NCBI GenBank assembly: GCA_965112735.1
Contig: OZ218952.1
Location: 5,518,001 to 5,582,000 of the forward strand
DNA: 64,000 nucleotides
Direction: 5' to 3'
Source: Phaeosaccion multiseriatum
Lineage: Eukaryota; Protista; Ochrophyta, other classes
Below, piece after piece: positions 43,472 to 62,045 of this stretch. Numbering within the stretch: position 1 is the stretch's first letter; each line of letters starts with the position of its first letter. A program made the translations under genes and the position numbers. The notes beneath the pieces were generated by a model, which was not told where the DNA came from, ran no database searches, and saw only the letters and a program-made list of their open reading frames with translations.

Positions 43472-46400
43472 ATGTCTAGCGTCCTCGAAGAGCAGCGTAG
43501 AATACTCACAGCCATCTTTTACGCCACGAGCGGACCCGCTTGGTCAAACATTACAGGATGGAACACGGAAGCACCATTGGAGACCTGGTTCGGAGTGAGC
43601 GTAGAGAATGGCTATGTGGTGAAGCTCGACCTGAAAAGCAACGGCCTCAGAGGTGGGAGAGACGTGATTATGGTTGTTGCGCCTTAGGTCCTGAAGTGTA
43701 TTCTAAAGTCCAGAAGGTGTGGCCCAACTTTTCTCGCGTCCGCTTGACTTAGTGTGACCATAGAACTTTCCACCCATCCGCAGGGAGTATTCCAAGGGAG
43801 CTTGGAGTTCTTCAGAACCTTACGGGACTGTACCTCGGCAACAATAACCTCACTGGTGAGTGGTACGCGAACCCGTTCGCGTCCCTTTGACTTGGTATGA
43901 GCATGAACTAATGAACTTTCCTCCCATCCGCAGGGAGCATTCCACCCGAGCTTGGAAGTCTGGAGAAGCTTGAGTATTTGAACCTCTCCGACAATAAGCT
44001 CACTGGTTAGTGGTACGCGAACCCGTCCGCGTCCCTTTGACTATCAGTGTGACCAAAGAACTCTCCTCCCATCCACAGGGAGCATTCCACCCGAGCTTGG
44101 AAGTCTTGAGAAACTGAAGGCGCTCAACCTTTGGATCAATCAGCTCAGCGGTAGGTCGTAGGCGTACCGTTCGCGTCCCTTTCACTTAATATGAGTATAT
44201 CCCAAAAAAAAAAAACAAAAAAAAAAACCCTCCGATACACAGGTCCTATTCCCGCTGCCCTCACCGGGCGATTGGGGGTCAAAATCACGCATTACGCTTT
44301 CCGTGGTAACACCCTCAGTCTCCCAGAAGACATCAACACCCAGACCCATCTGACCAAGCTCGATTTGTCCAATCAGGACCTTGTAGGTAGGTGGTACGCG
44401 TACCCGTTCCCGTCCCTTTGACTTGATATCAGTGTGACAAGAACTCTCCTCCCACCCGCAGGGAGGATTCCACGAGAGCTTGGAGGTCTTCAGAACCTTG
44501 AGAGACTGTTCCTCAACAACAATCAGCTCACTGGTGAGTGGTACGCGAACCCGCTCGCGTCCCTTTCGCTTGAAAGTCATATGACAAAGAACTTCCCTCC
44601 GCTCCGCAGGGAGCATTCCACCCGAGCTTGGAGCTCTGGAGAAGCTTAAGCGTTTGAACCTCTCCCACAATAAGCAGCTCACCGGTAAGTGGTACGCGAA
44701 CCCGTTCGCGTCCCTTTCACTTGATATGAGTGTGATCAAAGAACTCTCCTCCCATCCGCAGGGAGCATTCCACCCGAGCTTGGAGGTCTTCAGAACCTTG
44801 CGAGTCTGCACCTCGAGAACAATAAGCTCACTGGTGAGTGGTACGCGAAACCGTTCGTGGTACGCCCACCCGTTCGCGTCCCTTTCACTTAATTTTAGTA
44901 TGCTCAAATGACTTCCCTCGCATACGCAGGGAGCATTCCACCCGAGCTTGGACGTCTCGTCCAGCTCACCCGTCTGTTCCTCCACGGCAATGAGCTCTCC
45001 GGTGAGTGGTACGCGTACCCGTTCGCGTCCCTTTCGCTTGATAGTCGTGTGACAAAGAACTTCCCTCCGCTCCGCAGGGAGCATGCCAAGGGAGCTTGGA
45101 AGTCTGGAGAAGCTTGAGTATTTGGACCTCTCCTACAACAAGCTCACTGGTAAGTGGCACGCGTACCCGTTCACACCCTTTGACCTGGAGCTCAGCGTGA
45201 CCAAAGAACTTTCTAGCCCCATTTGACTTGAAATACTGACAAGAGCGAAAATCGTCTCCCTTCCTGCTTGGCCGTTTCCAGAGATATCGCTTTACGCAGC
45301 AAGAGGCCTGGAGAAGCTCTCAAAACTGCAAACATTACACCTCCATGGCAATCCTTGGACAGCACCCAGCGTCGATGTGGTGGCTCTCGGCCTTGAGGCA
45401 GTGACGCGGTATTGGATCGACCTGACTCAAGGCAAGGAGCGGTCGTGGAAACTCAAGGTACTGTTGGTGGGGCGGCACAAGGCAGGGAAGACGACCTTGG
45501 CGCTATCGCTAACAGGGGGACAGAGGGATCCTCCTATTGGACAGGATGAGTCGACGGTTGGCATCGAGACGAACTCAGTAACGCTGGGGGAGGACGAGAG
45601 TAAGCAATTGGAATTGGTGATTTGGGACTTTGCGGGGCAGCAGGATTACTACGCCTACCACCAGCTGTTTCTCACCAAGTGGGCGTTGTACATACTCACC
45701 GTCAACCTCTCGGCCTTTAGCGGGGGATCAGAGAGAGTGGAACGCGATTTGGTTGTTGAGTGGCTCGATGCTCTGCAAGCATACGCGCCTGGCAGTGTTG
45801 TGGTTGTTTTGGGATCTCACCGTGATACCGTGGAGCGGGGGGGGGGGGACGTTGACAAGGTAGTGCGTGACGTCAAGAAACTAGTGGACAGAGTTCTGAG
45901 GACACATGCGAGATGCGGTGGAACCATAGAGCCTTTAAAGGTGCAAGAGAAGTACTTGGCTGTGGATCTCACAGCCGACGAAGATGTGCAGAAGGTTCGC
46001 GAGTACATTAAGTCGCTCGCGCTGGACGGCTGCACCGAGGAGACACCCAGCACGCTGTTCCCGGATGTAGGAAAGGTGGTGCCCCGCCCGTGGGTGACGG
46101 TACGCCTCACACTAGAAGAGTACAAGGACGAGCTGTGCATTGGTGATAAGCAGCTGCAGGACAAGTGGAGGGAGTCCGAGGGAGCTCAGGAACTCAACAT
46201 AGACGACCCCGAGAAGACTTTTGAGTTGGCCTTGACATGGCAACAGGCAGTAGGAGCGGTGCTGTGGCTGGAGGGGTATGTGCACGTCAACCCACTTTGG
46301 CTGATGGCATTGGTCAAGCCACTTGCTTCCCACAAACTCACGAAAGACAGGGTAGAAGACGAGGGGTGGCGCAATATGCTTACTGATATGGCGGAGAACA

Positions 46401-47737
46401 ACATTGGGCCCAACAAACGGCTTCCATCGTTCCTTGCTCTTCACGAGGAGGAGAGCAATTTCCTGACCAAAGCAACGACTTCTTCCGAGTACATCTATTG
46501 CCTGTGGCAGCTCTGGGTGTCCGTGGGACACGAAGTCGGTGCTGCGTCCTGCGAAGAAGGTGAGCCAGTGAAGAAGGCGTTTCGGCGGCTCGAAGAGGAC
46601 ACGGAGTTCTTCAAAGGCATGCTTAAGACACTGGCTCAGTACGGTGTGATCCTGCCCGTGACCGGACTCCAAGACGAGGAGGGCCGTAAGGACGTGTACG
46701 TGGCCCCAACGAGGCTCCGATTAGGCGGGGATGGCAATGCTGAGGTGCGGGAGGTCTTAACGGCTTTCCTCAAGGCGGGGGCGGAGGAGTGTACTCGAGG
46801 CCATTTCAAGGCGTGCAATGCTCTTTTTCCGTCTGGGACGCTACCCTTTTTGCTTGCCTGCTTTCTGGGAAAGCGAAACAAGGAGGTGGTCGTCCAGATC
46901 TACGGGTGCGCCAAGTATGCCGCTGCGCTTCGGGTGAACCACGTGGACGTTCTCGTCTACGTAGAAGGGAGCGATCTTCTGCTGTACGTGAAGAGCAATA
47001 CCCAGCGTAGCTGTCGGCACGTTGGGGGGATGGTTCACAATTGGATCGGAGATATGCTGGACGAGAGGTTCAAGGGCTTAGCCTTCATTTCCCCTGAAGC
47101 ACCCATGGAGTCGATTGCAGGCAGACGTCACCCCCTGGCGGGCGAGCTGGGCCTGCTCGACGACGAGTATGCCAAGGACGACGCGGCGCAGTTCGATGTC
47201 TTTTTGAGCCACGCCGGGCCCGACAAGTGGGGGCTTGTCTACAACCTGTGGGTGGCGCTGTGGGACGACGGCATAACGGCCTTTCTGGATAGGGAGGATC
47301 TTCAATTGGGTCGTCAAGCTCCCGGCTACGTCGTCAATGCGGCGAAGAAGGCCAAGATCGGATTGGTGGTGCTCAGCCCAGCGTTCCTCTGCCGCGAGTG
47401 GTGCCTCAAGGAGACAGAGATTTTCATGGAGAGGCTTGAGAAAAGGAGAATGGGCGTCGAGGAGGAGAAGGACTTCCTGGTGGTGCCCCTCTTCCACAAA
47501 CTCACACCGCACGACTGCTACAACGGAACGTATCAGCTGCTCGAGGCTCATCCCGAGATAGCCAAACAGTGGGAGGAGTGGGAACAGAATGATGGACCGG
47601 AGAAATACTGGCCGAAGCTGTGGCAGTCTCTTTTGCTTGTCCTTGCGGGGCAGACCGGCCTGGAGTATCAGGAAGAGCAGTATGAGGCCGATTACGTTGA
47701 GAAAGTAAGGGCGCGCATTAAGACTACACTAAGATGA
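43472..47737 (+). CDS. LRR-ROC-COR-TIR protein A (intact, 11 exons)
   Basis: N-cap exon 43472-43652. LRR exons 43784-43855, 43934-44005, 44079-44150, 44243-44386, 44462-44533, 44610-44684, 44762-44833, 44930-45001, 45078-45149. Terminal exon 45282-47737 with P-loop VGRHKAGKTT, STVGIE, WDFAGQ, GSHRD, COR-like VHVNPLWL and TIR FDVFLSHAG...EWCLKE. All junctions were checked and are in frame. Confidence 0.92.
43784..45180 (+). repeat. LRR exon/intron cassette array A (~150-bp units)
   Basis: Intron consensus GTRAGTGGTACGCGAACCCGTTCGCGTCCCTTT...TGACCAAAGAACTYTCCTCCCATCCGCAG alternates with 72-nt-type exons. Confidence 0.92.
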
Positions 47738-51372: not shown

Positions 51373-54300
51373 ATGTCTAGTGTTGAGGAGGAGCGTAGAA
51401 TACTCACAGCCATCTTTCACGCCACGAGCGGATCCGGTTGGGCTAACACTACAGGAGTGACGGTAGAGAATGGCTATTTGGTGACGCTCGACCTGAAATA
51501 CAACGGCCTCAGAGGTGAGAGAGGTGTGATTATGGTTGTTGTGCCTTACGTCCTGAAGAGCATTCTTAAAGTCTGTTCAGAATGTTCGAATAGTTCTCTC
51601 TCTGTTCATGCAACAGTACATGTGATAGGGGGGGGGGATTATTAGCCCCCCTTGTCACAATTATTAGCCCTCCTTGCATGTGATGGGTCTAGAATATTCG
51701 GGAAGAAGGACGAAGCAAAGCGGGGCAAGAGAAGGCGGGAGGCAGCGGCATGACGTGGTAGTCCAGCGAACCCTTGGCGTCCCTTTCACTTGATATGAGT
51801 ATGACCAAAGAACTCTCCTCCCATCCGCAGGGAGCATTGAGCTCACCGGTGAGTGGTACGCGCACCCGTTCGCGTCCCTTTCACTTGATATGAGTATGAC
51901 CAAGGAACTTTCCTTCATACTCAGGGCTCATTCCACCCGAGCTTGGAAGTCTGGAGAAGCTCAAGCGTTTGAGCCTCTCCCACAACAGGCTCACTGGTAA
52001 GTGGTACACACACCCGTTCGTGTCCCTTTCACGTGTTATGAGTATGACCAAAGAACTTTCCTCCCATCCGAAGGGAGCATTCCAACGGACCTTGGAAGTC
52101 TGGAGAAGCTTGATCATTTGGACCTCTCCTTCAACGAGCTCACTGGTAAGTGGTACGCGTACCCGTTCGCGTCCTTTGACTTGATCTTGGTCTGACCAAA
52201 GAACTTCCCTCCGCTCCGCAGGGAGCATTCCGGAGGGGCTTACAAGTCTGGAGAAGCTTGAGCACTTGGGCCTCTCCGACAACAAGCTCACTGGTAAGTG
52301 GGACGCACAGCCGTTCGCGTCCCTTTCACTTGATATGGGTGTGACTCAAGAACTTTCCTCCATCTATAACCCAACAATATTCCCTCCGATACACAGGCCC
52401 TATTCCCGCTGCCCTCATCGGGCGATTGGGGATCAAAATTACGCATTACGCCTTCCGTGGTAACAATCTCAGTCTCCCAAAAGACGTCAACACCCAGACC
52501 CATCTGACCAAGCTCGATTTGTCCCATCAGGACCTTGTAGGTAGGTGGTACGCGAACCCGTTCGCGTCCCTTTCGGTTGATAGTCGTGTGACCAAAGAAC
52601 TTCCTCCCGTCCGCAGGGAGAATTCCACAGGAGCTTAGAAGTTTGGAGAATCTTGAGGTTTTGAGCCTCTCCTACAACCGGCTCACGGGTAAGTGGAACG
52701 CACACCCTTGCGCATCCCCTTGGACTTGATATTGGTCGAGCTGAAGAACTTCCCCCCCATCTCAGAGAGTATTCCATCGGAACTTGGAAATCTTTCAAAC
52801 CTTCGAGAACTGGGCCTCAACTTTAACAATCTAAAAGGTAGGTGGTAGTGAACGCTTTTGCGCCCCTTTGATTTGATATCAGTGTGACCAAAGAACTCTC
52901 CTCCCATCCGCAGGTCACATTCCAAAAGAGCTTGGAAGTCTTAAGAACCTGACGGTGCTCAACCTGTGGGAAAACCAGCTCAGCGGTAAGTGGTCGCATA
53001 CACGTTCACGCCCCTTTGACTTGATATAAGTGTGACCAACGAACTTTCCATCCACCCGCAGGGAGCATTCCAAAGGAGCTTGGAGACTTGAAGAAGCTTG
53101 AGCGTTTACTTCTCAGCCGCAACAAGCTCACCGGTGAGTGGTACGCACACTCCGTTCGCCTCCCTTTGATGTGGTATTCGTCTAACCAGAGAACATCCCT
53201 TCGCTCCGCAGGGAAGATCCCATCCGAGCTCGGCAGTCTCCACCAGCTGACGCGGCTTGATCTCGCCAGCAACGATTTCTCCGGTGAGTTATACGGGCGC
53301 CCATTCGCGCCCCGTTGACACGTTTGCGTATAACCCAACATGTTCCCTCCGATACACAGGTCCTATTCCCCCTGCCCTCATCAGGCGATTGGGGATCAAC
53401 ATCCCGGATTACTCTTTCAGTGGTAACAACCTCAGTCTCCCAGGAGACATCGACACCCAGACCCATCTGACCAAGCTCGATTTGTCCAATCAGGGCCTTG
53501 TGGGTAGGTTGTACACACACCCGTTCGCGTCCCCGTGACTTGACGTAGGTATGACCAAAGAGCTTTCCTTCCATCCGCAGGAAGCATTCCGGTGAAGCTT
53601 GGACAGCTTTCAAACCTTCGAGAACTTCGGCTCAACGGGAACAATCTAGAAGGTTGGTGCGCGAACCCGTTCGCGTCCCTTTCACTTGATTTTTGTATGA
53701 TCAAAGAGTTTTCCTCCATCCCCAGAGAGCATTCCACCCGAGCTTGGAGGTCTTCAGAACCTTGAGATACTGCTCCTAAACAACAATAAGCTCACTGGTA
53801 GGTGGTACGCGTACCCGTTCGTGTCCTTTTGGACTTGATATTGGTCGAGCTGAAGAACTTCCCTCCCCTGCGCAGGGAGCATTCCAAGGGAGCTTGGAGA
53901 CTTGAAGAAGCTGGAGCGTTTACTTCTCCGCAGCAACAAGCTCACCGGTGAGTGGTACGCACACCCCGTTCGCGTCCCTTTGATGTGGTATTCGTCTAAC
54001 CAGAGAACATCCCTCCGCTCCGCAGGGAAGATCCCATCCGAGCTCGGCGATCTCCACCAGCTGACGCGGCTTGATCTCGCCAGCAACGATTTCTGCGGTG
54101 AGTTATACGGGCACCCATTCGCGCCCCGTTGACACGTTTGCGTATAACCCAACATATTCCCTCCGATACACAGGTCCTATTCCCCCTGCCCTCATGATGC
54201 GATTGGGGATCAACATCACGAATTACTCTTTCAGTGGTAACACCCTCAGTCTCCCAGAAGACATCGACACCCAGACCCATCTGCCCAAGCTCGATTTGTC

Positions 54301-57300
54301 CAATCAGGGCCTTGAAGGTAGGTGGTACGCGTACCCGTTCGCGCCCCCTTGACACGTTTGTTTATAACCTACTTCTAACATCTTCCCTCTGATACATAGG
54401 TCGTATCCCCCCCCCCCTCATCGGGCGATTGGGAATCCACATCAAAATATTCGCATTCGGTGGCAACTCTCTCAGACTCCCCAAGGACATTCACAACCAG
54501 TCACACCTGACTAAGCTCGAATTGGCCGATCAAGGCCTTGAGGGTGAGTGGTACACGCACCCCAGTTCGCGTCCACTTGATATTCGAGCCGATGTAACTC
54601 TCCTCTGCTCGGCAGGCAAGATTCCAAAGGAGCTGGGCGAACTTAGGAGCTTGACCGTCCTGGACCTCTCCGACAACAAGCTCAGAGGTAAGCCTACTCG
54701 TTATCTCCAACCGCCCGTGCCGCTACCGTAGTGTTTGACGTAAGACGTCCCTTCCCCTCCACAGGCGCTATTCCAGCGGCCCTCATCGGGCGATTGGGAG
54801 TCCAGATCACAAGCTACAAATTCAAGGGCAAGAACAACTCTCTCCGTCTCCCCAAGGGCATTGGCACCCAGTCACACCTCACTGAGCTCGACATGTCCGA
54901 CCAGGGCCTTGAAGGTGAGTGGCCTCCGTTGTCAAATTCACTTGGTACTTGAATTGATTGACAAACTCCTCCACGCCACAGGGAGCATACCATCGGGTCT
55001 TAAAGACCTACAGAACCTGAAGATACTCAATCTCAACATGAACAGGCTCAAAGGTATGTGGTACGCGAACCCGTTGTCCACCTCACTTGATCTTTCTATG
55101 ACCAAACAATGCTCCTCCCGTCTGCAGGCGAGATTCCGAAGCTGGACGGTCTGACGAACCTGACCACCCTTCACCTCGCAGCGAACAACCTCAGCGGTAA
55201 GTGCTACGCGAACGCTTGTCCACTTCACTTGATACTAGTGTGACCAAAGACTTTTGTTCCACTCCACAGGGAGCATTCCAGCCTGGAATTTCGGGCCTGG
55301 AGGTCTCCACGGGCTGACCACGCTGTCACTCTCTAGTAACGAGCTCACCGGTAAGTGGTACACTCGTACCTTCTGACGCCCCCTCATATTGGTAGGATTT
55401 GGTTCCTTTAGTGCAGGTCTTACTTCCCTCGTTATTTATGTTCCTGGTGGCCTTTCCTGTTGGCCTTTGCTTCCCCCCCCCCGCTTGCCTCGTTGCCCAG
55501 AGCTCGATCTTGAGACCGCTCAGAGCTTACTCGAGCATACCCCCGCTGCACTCATATCTGGGAATGCGTTTGCCAACATTCCTAACGGCGTCTGCCGAAA
55601 TGGGCTGGCATCTGTCGTTCGATTTCTGGAAGATTTGGCACAGAGAGCCGTGGCTTGCTGGGATCTGAAGGTCGTATTGCTAGGGTCAGAGGGTGCTGGA
55701 AAAACGAGTCTTGTTCGCTCCATCGTGGAGCGTGGTGCTGCCCAGACGGAGGGCGCATCGCCATCCACCGTGCTGGTGGATACTCACGTTTGGCAACCAA
55801 GATGGGATGACAAGACCCTGAATGTGCACTTCTGGGACATCGGCGGTCAGCACTGCTCCTCGGCGATTCTCCCGCTTTTTCTGACCGAAGGGGCGCTGTA
55901 TGTTTTGGCGGTTGATCTCCACCGCTACGCTACCACTCCGTCTTCAGCGAGGTGTGATGTGACGCACTGGCTTGAGGTGGTTCAGGAACACTGCCCAGGG
56001 AGTGTGTTGGTTGTGGTGGGCACCCACACCGATGAGTTTCGAACACGTCAAGGGATTGATGAAGCTCTAGCACGTCTGAATCGTGAGGTGCTGGACCACA
56101 GAGAGAGTATGAGTATCGGGGCACAATCATCTTCAAAGATTGAGGTGAAAGAGGTCTTTGCTCTCGGGGTCGACTCACCTAAAAGTGTGCAGGCTGTGAT
56201 GGATCACATTCAAAGCCTTGCGCTGGGTCAGGGTCAGGGTCAGGATCAGGGGCAAGGTCAGGGTGACGCGCAGCAGGCGCAGCAGGGGCAGCAGGGGCAG
56301 CAGGGGCAAGGTCTTGGCGTATCGCCAGCGTGTAAGCCCTTCCCGGACATAGGTAAGCAAATCCCAAAATCGTGGAGGGATGTGTACAATGCGCTCGATA
56401 ACCTGAGGAAGAAGGGGCGCGTATTTGCTTCGTTTTCTGATGTGGTGGAGGAAGTAGGGAGGGGTGGAGAGAGCACCACACGTGAGGCCTTGCGCCTTCA
56501 CCAGAATGCAGGCTTTGTGCTTTGGGGAGGCCATGCTGACGATGTGATTTATCTTGATCCGGCGTGGTTGATGGCGTTGCTAAGGCCGTTGGCTGACCAC
56601 AAGCTGAGCGAGCGTCGAGAGAACAGCACCTGGGAAAAGGGTGAAGATCAACTCTTTGCGCAGGGGGAGAGTCATGCACATCTCGTGGGAGGGCAAGTCG
56701 TGTACCGTGATCTGCGTGTGGAGGGGGACACCTTTTGCCACACCGGTCATCTAAATCGCGCCTACCTAAGCCTTCTGTGGAAGCTTTGGCACCAGTGCCC
56801 GCTGGAAGGTGAAGTGATTCAAGGATGCAGTGATGCGAGGCGACTCGCTCCGTCCAGAGTCCTGGAAGACGCACCATTGTTCAAGACCACGCTGAACACT
56901 TTGGTGCGGAAGGGTATTCTCATTCCTGTGAAAGAGGGTGCGGAGACTAGTAAATACGTCGTTCCTGCACGCCTGGCGAGTATGAGTGAGCGGGGTCCTC
57001 TGCGTGCATTCAGACGATGGGGCACAGGGGGCAGGGTGTGGGAAAAGAGAGTCACGGCCGCACGCGGAATGCCCTTTCCAATGAGCACCCTGGCGCTCTT
57101 TCTGGCTTCGGTCGGCAGTGCTCGTCAAGTGGATATAAAGGCATGTTCGAGCAGGAGCGCGTGTATTTTGATCAAGGGTGTTGCCACTTTCGTAGCGGTC
57201 AGAGACTTTGATTGTTCCGTGTACGTTTGTGGCGATGGCGTCTCTGCACAAGCAGCTCTGAACACGTGCCACAGCTGGCTCTGGTCGACGTTAGACAACG

Positions 57301-61557: not shown

Positions 61558-62045
61558 CTTGGGGCCTTCTTCTTGGCCACAACCGGAGCGAGATGGAGGG
61601 AAATGGATGGAGCAACGACAAAAAACCCCTTTGAAGAATTTGCGTGGAGGGAGACGAGGATGGATACGTGGTGGGTTTTGAGCTGCCCCACAATGGGACC
61701 CAAGGTAAGAAGGTCGTGGAGGTTGTGGGGCTGGGGTCAGGGTTGGTATCCCCCTTGCGCGTGTTCATCTCTACATGCGGCTGGGGAAGATAGCGCTCTT
61801 GCTGAAGAAAGGAATGTCTTCGGGGTGGTTGCCAGTGACTGCCTACAACTCCCCCTTAAAAGGTTTGGGACTCAGCTTTGAGTGTAGGTGGGAAAAGGGA
61901 CTTGGCGTTTATAATGAGCAAGAGCATTCCCCATCTCGCATTTCACTAACGGAGCATTCCGTCGGAGCTATGTTAGATAGACCAGCTCTCCGATTTCCTG
62001 GGGCTGCGAGCCTGTCCGACAAGTACCTCACAGGTAAGTGGTACG
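61558..62045 (+). pseudogene. Decayed third LRR(-ROCO) locus: frameshifted N-cap exon plus one degenerate LRR exon
   Basis: LGAFFLATTGARW / GWSND / GYVVGFELPHNGTQG|GTAAG parallels AIFYATSGPAW..GWNTE..GYVVKLDLKSNGLRG. 61951-62033 reads SIPSEL...SLSDKYLT and is followed by GTAAGTGGTACG. Confidence 0.7.

Follow-up and report, generated by a model that had tools for sequence, protein, structure and literature searches.

A conserved intronic block between shuffled LRR cassettes of Phaeosaccion multiseriatum and its possible role as a homology joint

Gene layout and family

The DNA analysed here (the window) is a stretch of 64,000 nucleotides of the Phaeosaccion multiseriatum genome (assembly GCA_965112735.1, contig OZ218952.1, positions 5,518,001 to 5,582,000 of the forward strand). 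It carries two tandem genes, A and B, on its plus strand, the N-terminal halves of which are runs of 72-nt exons and introns of about 77 nt, and our subject is a partly palindromic motif that follows the 5' splice site of these introns. According to an exon scan, each 72-nt phase-2 exon encodes one plant-type leucine-rich repeat (LRR). The LRR arrays span 43784-45149 in gene A and 51831-55350 in gene B, the latter including a remnant exon (51831-51848); TRF and the sequence itself give a tandem period of 149-152 bp for the window arrays, with a unit of 149 bp. The open reading frame in the large 3' exon of gene A (45377-47737, plus strand) encodes a ROC GTPase followed by a COR-like region and, at the C-terminus, a TIR domain; it serves as a non-shuffled comparator. 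Its P-loop reads GRHKAGKTT, its homologues carry Pfam Roc (PF08477), and its TIR domain reads FDVFLSHAG. The closest database relative is a protein of Chrysoparadoxa australica (36% identity, Pfam Roc and TIR), followed by brown-algal ROCO proteins. The protein-level evidence comes from single exons and from this large ROC-TIR reading frame.

Both genes belong to an LRR-ROC-COR(-TIR) family that resembles immune receptors and comprises about 24 loci in an assembly of 67 Mb and 22 contigs. Twenty-three loci outside the window were fetched, and from the family we extracted 280 cassettes ascertained by their exon (AG, 72 nt, GT; frame open at +3; pattern LxxLxLxxN) as well as 215 complete introns.

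Motif and conserved block

A preliminary description of this DNA reported that most LRR introns carry, directly after the donor, a motif with a perfect 8-bp inverted repeat in its consensus. The presence of the motif is borne out: genes A and B together have 31 cassette introns, of which 14 match it with at most 3 edits and 26 with at most 6. The 24-mer GGTACGCGAACCCGTTCGCGTCCC has 13 matches in the window at up to 3 mismatches, compared with none in 100 shuffles, and the motif invariably starts at intron position +7. The genome-wide search which the same description had proposed yields 164 matches of the 24-mer at up to 2 mismatches and none for the reversed control. Among the matches listed, every site lies in 149-bp LRR arrays, distributed over nine contigs, and the inverted arms are adjacent rather than terminal; the interpretation as an introner, or as a mobile intron resembling a miniature inverted-repeat transposable element, is rejected on these grounds. 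The exact right arm stands in register in 83 of 145 cassettes that were ascertained by the exon alone, and therefore the motif-based choice of loci introduces little bias. The introns are of nearly uniform length, with 76-78 nt in 166 of the 215 complete ones.

The perfect palindrome, by contrast, holds for the local consensus of gene A but not for the family. It is found in three of the 31 window introns (at 43862, 44691 and 52547), and all eight stem pairs form in just 19 of the 280 cassettes (7%), the mode being six of eight. Two stem pairs are broken in the family consensus. The commonest form (65/280) reads ...ACGCACAC-CC-GTTCGCGT, and intron positions 14-15 are AC in 65 of 280 cassettes, compared with GA in 10. 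There is one copy of the motif per unit, in constant orientation relative to the gene, and no second type of signal was seen in the arrays. A site-specific signal of the recombination signal sequence (RSS) type, which is bipartite and occurs in opposed orientation, was considered and rejected on account of this arrangement.

Between loci, the introns are less diverse than the synonymous sites next to them: mean diversity is 0.19 in the intron and 0.41 at those 4-fold sites of the neighbouring exons that belong to conserved residues. All eight of these 4-fold sites exceed a diversity of 0.15, while over half of the intron sites do not. The palindrome has no privileged share in this conservation. 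Its arms do not differ from the remaining intron (0.17 versus 0.21, p=0.75), as the left arm contains +14 and +15, which rank with the most variable positions of the whole intron (0.53 and 0.57). The idea that the arms are specifically conserved is thus rejected. Instead, with +14 and +15 set aside, most positions of a block from +5 to +41 show a diversity of 0.03-0.18, and some non-palindromic positions of the block equal the arms in conservation. The conserved unit is this block, not the palindrome.

It could be argued that the introns are alike simply as recent copies of one cassette, and that the founder intron happened to contain the palindrome, which hitch-hiked along with it. The cassette is indeed a tandemly duplicated unit, a quasi-palindrome with six of eight pairs is unremarkable, the arms are as variable as other intron sites, and the motif is specific to this lineage (see below). 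We nevertheless regard this neutral scenario as very improbable. The 4-fold sites of the very same cassettes show twice the diversity of the intron, and diversity within arrays equals that between contigs, which indicates that the copies are old and well mixed. Furthermore, the variability of the intron is sharply site-specific, and the linkage trough described below requires localised exchange.

The preliminary description also considered an RNA hairpin controlling exon choice, and this proposal finds no convincing support in the structural analyses. Among 150 distinct introns there is no convincing covariation; double changes make up 12 of 1488 cells and single-sided breaks are far commoner, with the inner pairs 14-23 and 15-22 forming in 62 and 25 of the 150 introns, respectively. 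RNAalifold predicts no pairs in the consensus of the cassette introns, whole introns fold no better than their shuffles (z about -0.65; -0.64 and -0.68), and an Rfam scan gave no family matches in the arrays. The 30-mer around the perfect motif of intron 43856-43933 reaches -11.5 kcal/mol as RNA (z -2.6; whole intron z -0.64), but the dominant variant is weak, with -6.3 kcal/mol as RNA and -3.2 kcal/mol as DNA (z -0.9). We also considered an extended stem in which GUGAG at the 5' splice site pairs with positions 32-36. Its common polymorphisms are tolerated as wobbles, but 116 of 150 introns do not form pair 3-34. A structured RNA hairpin, either as the 8-bp stem or as the extended stem, is accordingly rejected, as neither covariation nor RNAalifold nor the single folds lend it convincing support.

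A broader role at the RNA level, as a splicing enhancer, a protein site or a donor-occluding stem which matches donors to acceptors 77 nt away, would turn the recombination pattern into a by-product. We consider this rather unlikely, although several observations agree with it. Positions +14, +15 and +34 vary freely next to fixed neighbours, and homogenisation alone would not spare such positions. The intron length is tightly held and the block directly follows the donor; in the extended stem 89% of cells are paired and the changes A4>G, A35>G, C30>U and C36>U are compatible with wobbles. These changes, however, are mostly uninformative, because the partners are fixed splice-site bases, and the consensus and folding results given above likewise speak against an RNA-level element. 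One array intron of near-normal length (81 nt; L016:6138-6218; G000:C15, about 2242137-2242217) moreover has a (TA)n run of similar length in place of the entire motif and may be described as a natural "motif knockout".

The LRR-cassette introns of other algae do not share the motif. Our outgroup sample comprised 26 distinct introns from Ectocarpus sp. 12, E. siliculosus, Ectocarpus sp. 4, Ectocarpus sp. 6, Hapterophycus and Chrysoparadoxa. None of them contains the core 12-mer, and there is no excess of palindromes near the donor (best stem 4.0 bp on average, compared with 4.1 in a control region and 3.6 in shuffles), which also counts against an RNA-level element. Deep conservation of the motif is thus rejected, and the motif is therefore lineage-specific.

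Exchange between cassettes

The LRR modules of the family are extensively reshuffled, as follows from the scrambled order of cassettes in near-identical paralogues and from the low differentiation between arrays. The paralogues L002-L005 are 92-96% identical in their non-LRR regions, but the best matches of their cassettes are out of order and range from 0.7 to 0.96 identity. Nearly the entire diversity of the family is found inside each array, with Fst values of 0-0.15, and homogenisation within arrays is rejected on this evidence. A particular case is a set of exons with 97-100% identity between L011 (6768-7490) and the minus strand of L021 (3963-4560), on contigs C11 and C16, in which cassettes 11, 12, 13 and 15 of the former match 5, 7, 6 and 9 of the latter; the pattern suggests a recent exchange or rearrangement between chromosomes.

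The position of exchange within the unit was approached through linkage, expressed as bias-corrected normalised mutual information between variable sites of the upstream exon, the intron and the downstream exon. Positions +3 and +4 associate with the upstream exon and positions from +31 onward with the downstream exon, whereas +14 and +15 associate with neither. Pairs of sites that span the block at a distance of 30-120 nt have a value of 0.0014, on a par with the permutation null (-0.0010 +/- 0.0010), compared with 0.092 within the left flank and 0.055 within the right flank at the same distance. The 3' part of the intron remains linked to its downstream exon over 30-120 nt (0.043; permutation null -0.0015 +/- 0.0014). 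A boundary scan has its minimum of 0.002-0.003 at intron positions 5-29, and this is replicated in two independent halves of the loci. Linkage thus drops locally beyond the effect of distance, as in a hotspot of recombination, the markers being paralogous cassettes of one genome. Mapping tracts of identity around exons that are nearly identical was uninformative here, as ungapped extension runs freely through the block.

Array edges and lesions, both obtained from a wrap-around profile alignment of all loci, point to the same region. Of 25 array starts, 22 fall within intron positions 10-25, 9 of them at position 16; array ends are most frequent at positions 39-43 (11/25). The block thus borders the arrays at either end. 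Unique duplications and deletions inside the intron number 26 in positions 5-41 and 6 in positions 42-74 (p=0.0012), and an independent count based on MAFFT gave 15 in the block compared with 8. The contention of the preliminary description that breakpoints are not uniformly distributed therefore stands for the block, though its companion, a conservation of the palindrome above the intron background, does not. Many of the lesions are events of 5, 8, 12, 14 or 19 nt, for which the near-repeat GTACGCG / GTTCGCG, 12 nt apart, offers an explanation.

Several individual lesions lie in the window, and the two that had been described as mapping to the motif in gene A and in an orphan cassette are confirmed. 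A 19-nt tandem duplication of intron positions +5 to +23 is located exactly at 44838-44875 on the plus strand (units 44838-44856 and 44857-44875; the position jumps from 23 back to 5). Its units are identical in 16 of 19 bases, it lengthens the intron (44834-44929) to 96 nt, and it is private to gene A, with none in the paralogues. An orphan decayed cassette (61884-62045, plus strand) has a pseudo-exon at about 61951-62033, followed by a donor and the motif head (62034-62045), and ends abruptly, homology being lost after GTAAGTGGTACG at 62045. The intron upstream of it (61884-61904) lacks the motif and has 7 nt in its place (61892-61898). The supposedly foreign sequence in intron 1 of gene B (51517-51830, plus strand), by contrast, is the normal intron 1 of the family, with the same join point in at least 14 paralogues located on other contigs; its unique part meets the cassette intron at the motif as GTGGTA, a 5-nt insert and GCGAACCC... 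(about 51756-51784). It is followed on the plus strand by the 18-nt remnant LRR exon (51831-51848), a lesion uncounted in the preliminary description, in which an internal in-frame deletion of 54 nt makes the exon position jump from 8 to 63. The breakpoint of this deletion lies within the exon and outside the motif.

Inverted cassettes were found at one locus only, L010 on contig C10. The two inversion junctions found there, one head-to-head and one tail-to-tail, both lie inside the palindrome. In a genome-wide search for further junctions strict patterns gave nothing and a looser pattern gave only this locus. The region (L010:1-5300; G000:C10:563000-568300) is organised as a higher-order repeat of about 590-740 bp with two plus-strand and two minus-strand cassettes, present in about 8 copies, and its exons are near-identical and partly broken. 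A different intron variant, a 5-nt duplication in the right arm (GTTCGCG TCGCG TCCC), occurs at several loci on different contigs (L002:4223-4303, L004:5155-5541, L013:6517-6598, L015:5167-5247 and others). Its shared presence indicates that an intron variant has spread between arrays.

The preliminary description interpreted the motif as a signal or fragile site for recombination. The concentration of exchange and lesions in the motif region agrees with this, but a dedicated signal is hard to reconcile with over 90% of copies being imperfect and with the two most variable positions lying in the left arm. In one version, which we judge improbable, the joint between cassettes would be an evolved break-prone, CpG-rich quasi-palindrome, placed every 149 bp, that initiates gene conversion, unequal exchange and an occasional fold-back inversion. 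In another, decidedly improbable one, the quasi-palindrome would be a dedicated break-prone or protein-recognised DNA site (a hairpin, a cruciform, or the target of a nuclease or recombinase), which initiates exchange, possibly somatically, as an evolved generator of diversity. In favour of such a site, the linkage trough reaches a depth of at least 30-fold when distances are matched, and homology alone predicts only about half of the crossovers in the block. Lesions cluster in the block, both inversion junctions fall within the palindrome, and the orphan cassette breaks off at the motif head, the motif being deleted in its upstream intron; judging from the consensus, the block is also rich in GC and CpG, which would fit biased gene conversion. 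On the other hand, perfect palindromes make up only 7% of the copies, the dominant form is as weak in DNA as stated above, and arms of 8 bp with a loop of 2 nt are too short for cruciform extrusion. A paired or opposed arrangement of signals is missing, inverted cassettes occur at a single locus, and one assembly cannot show somatic change. No recombinase turned up, although no search aimed at recombinases was made.

We consider it moderately probable that the motif forms the core of a conserved intronic joint of about 37 nt, which serves as a homology joint for germline exchange of cassettes and not as a hairpin or RSS-like signal. The exchanged module would consist of the 3' part of an intron, the 72-nt LRR exon and the following 5' splice site, with the joint (+5 to +41) separating one module from the next. 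With the exons diversified, the joint would be the longest stretch of identity common to otherwise different cassettes. The longest exact match between dissimilar cassettes lies within intron positions 1-41 in 60% of pairs, and positions 5-41 hold 47-60% of the weight of shared tracts, from which homology-dependent exchange alone is predicted to place about half of the crossovers in the block. Unequal crossing-over, gene conversion and template switching between cassettes in the germline would then resolve in the joint, so shuffling the modules and wiping out linkage across it. The near-repeats GTACGCG and GTTCGCG, which are also the inverted arms, may make the joint prone to small slippage duplications and deletions, and rarely to fold-back inversions.

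The homology joint may have a second function. Its site-specific conservation around the free positions +14 and +15 suggests that it is also held by selection, most plausibly for the efficient definition of introns of 77 nt. The uniformity of the joint is probably kept by recurrent exchange, by selection on very short introns, or by both. The palindromic symmetry as such is probably incidental, but may account for the local slippage and the rare inversions.

Several points weigh against exchange by homology alone, or against the precision with which it can be read. A complete loss of linkage is not obviously predicted from homology-dependent exchange, and the trough seems too deep for a roughly 2.4-fold advantage in homology per base alone; the motif may therefore also be break-prone in its own right. 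The informative sites between +5 and +30 are just the unlinked +14 and +15, so that the junction cannot be placed any finer. Linkage was measured over the paralogous cassettes of one assembly and not over individuals, and lesions shared by descent were de-duplicated by their coordinates alone. Mis-joins in the assembly of repeats would likewise fall in the longest shared k-mers, and the family was analysed in a single assembly.

Further features of the window

The introns of gene A illustrate the range of the block on the plus strand. The intron at 43856-43933 has a perfect motif, with the block at +5 to +41 and the arms at +10 to +17 (43865-43872) and +20 to +27 (43875-43882), and that at 44685-44761 is likewise perfect. 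One mismatch each is found at 44006-44078 (T22>C, pair broken), 44534-44609 and 45002-45077 (A15>T, pair broken). The intron at 44387-44461, which follows a long exon, has two mismatches in the 5' block; as the same block is present there, it follows any type of upstream exon. In the last intron of the array (45150-45291) the cassette 5' block continues into unique sequence up to the ROC exon. The gene B array (51849-55350, plus strand) has 22 cassette introns, 7 of which match the motif with at most 3 edits and 17 with at most 6; the introns at 54688 and 54915 do not carry the block.

Two types of exon in gene A depart from the length of 72 nt. The 75-nt exon at 44610-44684 has one added codon (...AATAAGCAGCTCACCG) and keeps the frame. 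A long irregular LRR exon of about 143-147 nt (...GPIP...LGVKITHYAFRGN.LSLP.D...) recurs at 44244-44386 in gene A and at 52397-52540, 53361-53503, 54175-54317 and 54399-54543 in gene B. It has a private 3' half in its upstream intron and the common 5' block downstream, from which it follows that the intron is modular. An A-rich tract (A11 C A10; 44205-44228) lies in the intron upstream of the long exon of gene A and is missing from the corresponding introns of gene B. Between genes A and B, the segment 50246-50462 gives sub-threshold matches, on both strands, to several miRNA families of plants and animals; with 31-47 bits they are far under the gathering scores and probably represent an artefact of low complexity or inverted repeats.

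Relation to known systems

The shuffling of type I LRR exons has been described in the LRR-ROCO genes of Ectocarpus (Zambounis et al. 2012, PMC3341825) and of four brown algae (Front Plant Sci 2024, PMC11378527). The family in P. multiseriatum has the same architecture in a different stramenopile that is not a brown alga. Common to both are the single LRR per 72-nt phase-2 exon, the order LRR-ROC-COR (with a COR-like region here), clustered paralogues with near-identical non-LRR parts and scrambled LRR arrays, and the presence of orphan and inactivated cassettes. In contrast to the brown-algal genes, the introns are uniformly about 77 nt long and share one common sequence; the sampled cassette introns of Ectocarpus and Hapterophycus have at least 115 nt, lack the motif, and are mutually unrelated unless recently duplicated. 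Inverted cassettes are common in Ectocarpus but confined to one locus here, and gene A, at least, differs in ending with a TIR domain. Intron motifs, palindromes and positions of breakpoints go unmentioned in PMC3341825 and PMC11378527, and the further literature searched yielded no such motif or palindrome either.

Assembly of the variable lymphocyte receptors (VLR) of lamprey and hagfish by copy choice was named as an analogy for the shuffling of LRR cassettes in PMC3341825. As in VLR genes, LRR modules recombine via short stretches of common sequence at the ends of modules. VLR assembly is somatic, templated from flanking cassettes and dependent on cytidine deaminases, with the homology residing in coding sequence. 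In P. multiseriatum, by contrast, the common sequence is intronic and the evidence concerns germline evolution only. With the RSS of V(D)J recombination the motif shares its nature as a short, conserved, non-coding element with a palindromic core that adjoins variable coding segments. An RSS consists of heptamer, spacer and nonamer and follows 12/23 pairing. Neither feature is present here; the motif stands in direct orientation on one side of each exon, and what lies in between is an intron, which is spliced rather than excised.

Homogenised introns beside diversified exons are a feature of the genes of the major histocompatibility complex (MHC). The SmPoMuc genes of Schistosoma evolve in concert as repeats of exon plus intron (PMC2576457). 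The present family resembles both in its repeated exon-intron units, in having introns that are more uniform than the selected exons, and in the appeal to gene conversion or unequal crossing-over among loci that lie on different chromosomes. It differs in that the uniformity is concentrated in a joint of 37 nt, with a measurable trough of zero linkage and with arrays that are bounded by the joint.

Template switching at quasi-palindromes and fold-back inverted duplication at short inverted repeats are known from work on bacteria and yeast. The short imperfect inverted repeat, the clustered small duplications and deletions, and the head-to-head and tail-to-tail junctions centred in the repeat are reminiscent of these processes. 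Unlike in those systems, however, there are two inversion junctions only, and most lesions are equally well explained by the direct near-repeat GTACGCG / GTTCGCG.

Conclusions

The exon shuffling of brown-algal ROCO genes has so far been described as an outcome only, and where and how the exchange takes place has been a question since 2012. The P. multiseriatum family provides a natural experiment on this question, with hundreds of cassettes that share one intronic joint, in which the point of exchange is placed within about 30 nt. It also provides a worked example of introns maintained at a higher uniformity than the synonymous sites of their neighbouring exons. Whether such receptors diversify in an adaptive-like manner becomes directly testable. 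If the joint should turn out to be break-prone, it would represent a built-in, possibly regulated or somatic, generator of diversity for TIR-linked immune receptors in a stramenopile alga.

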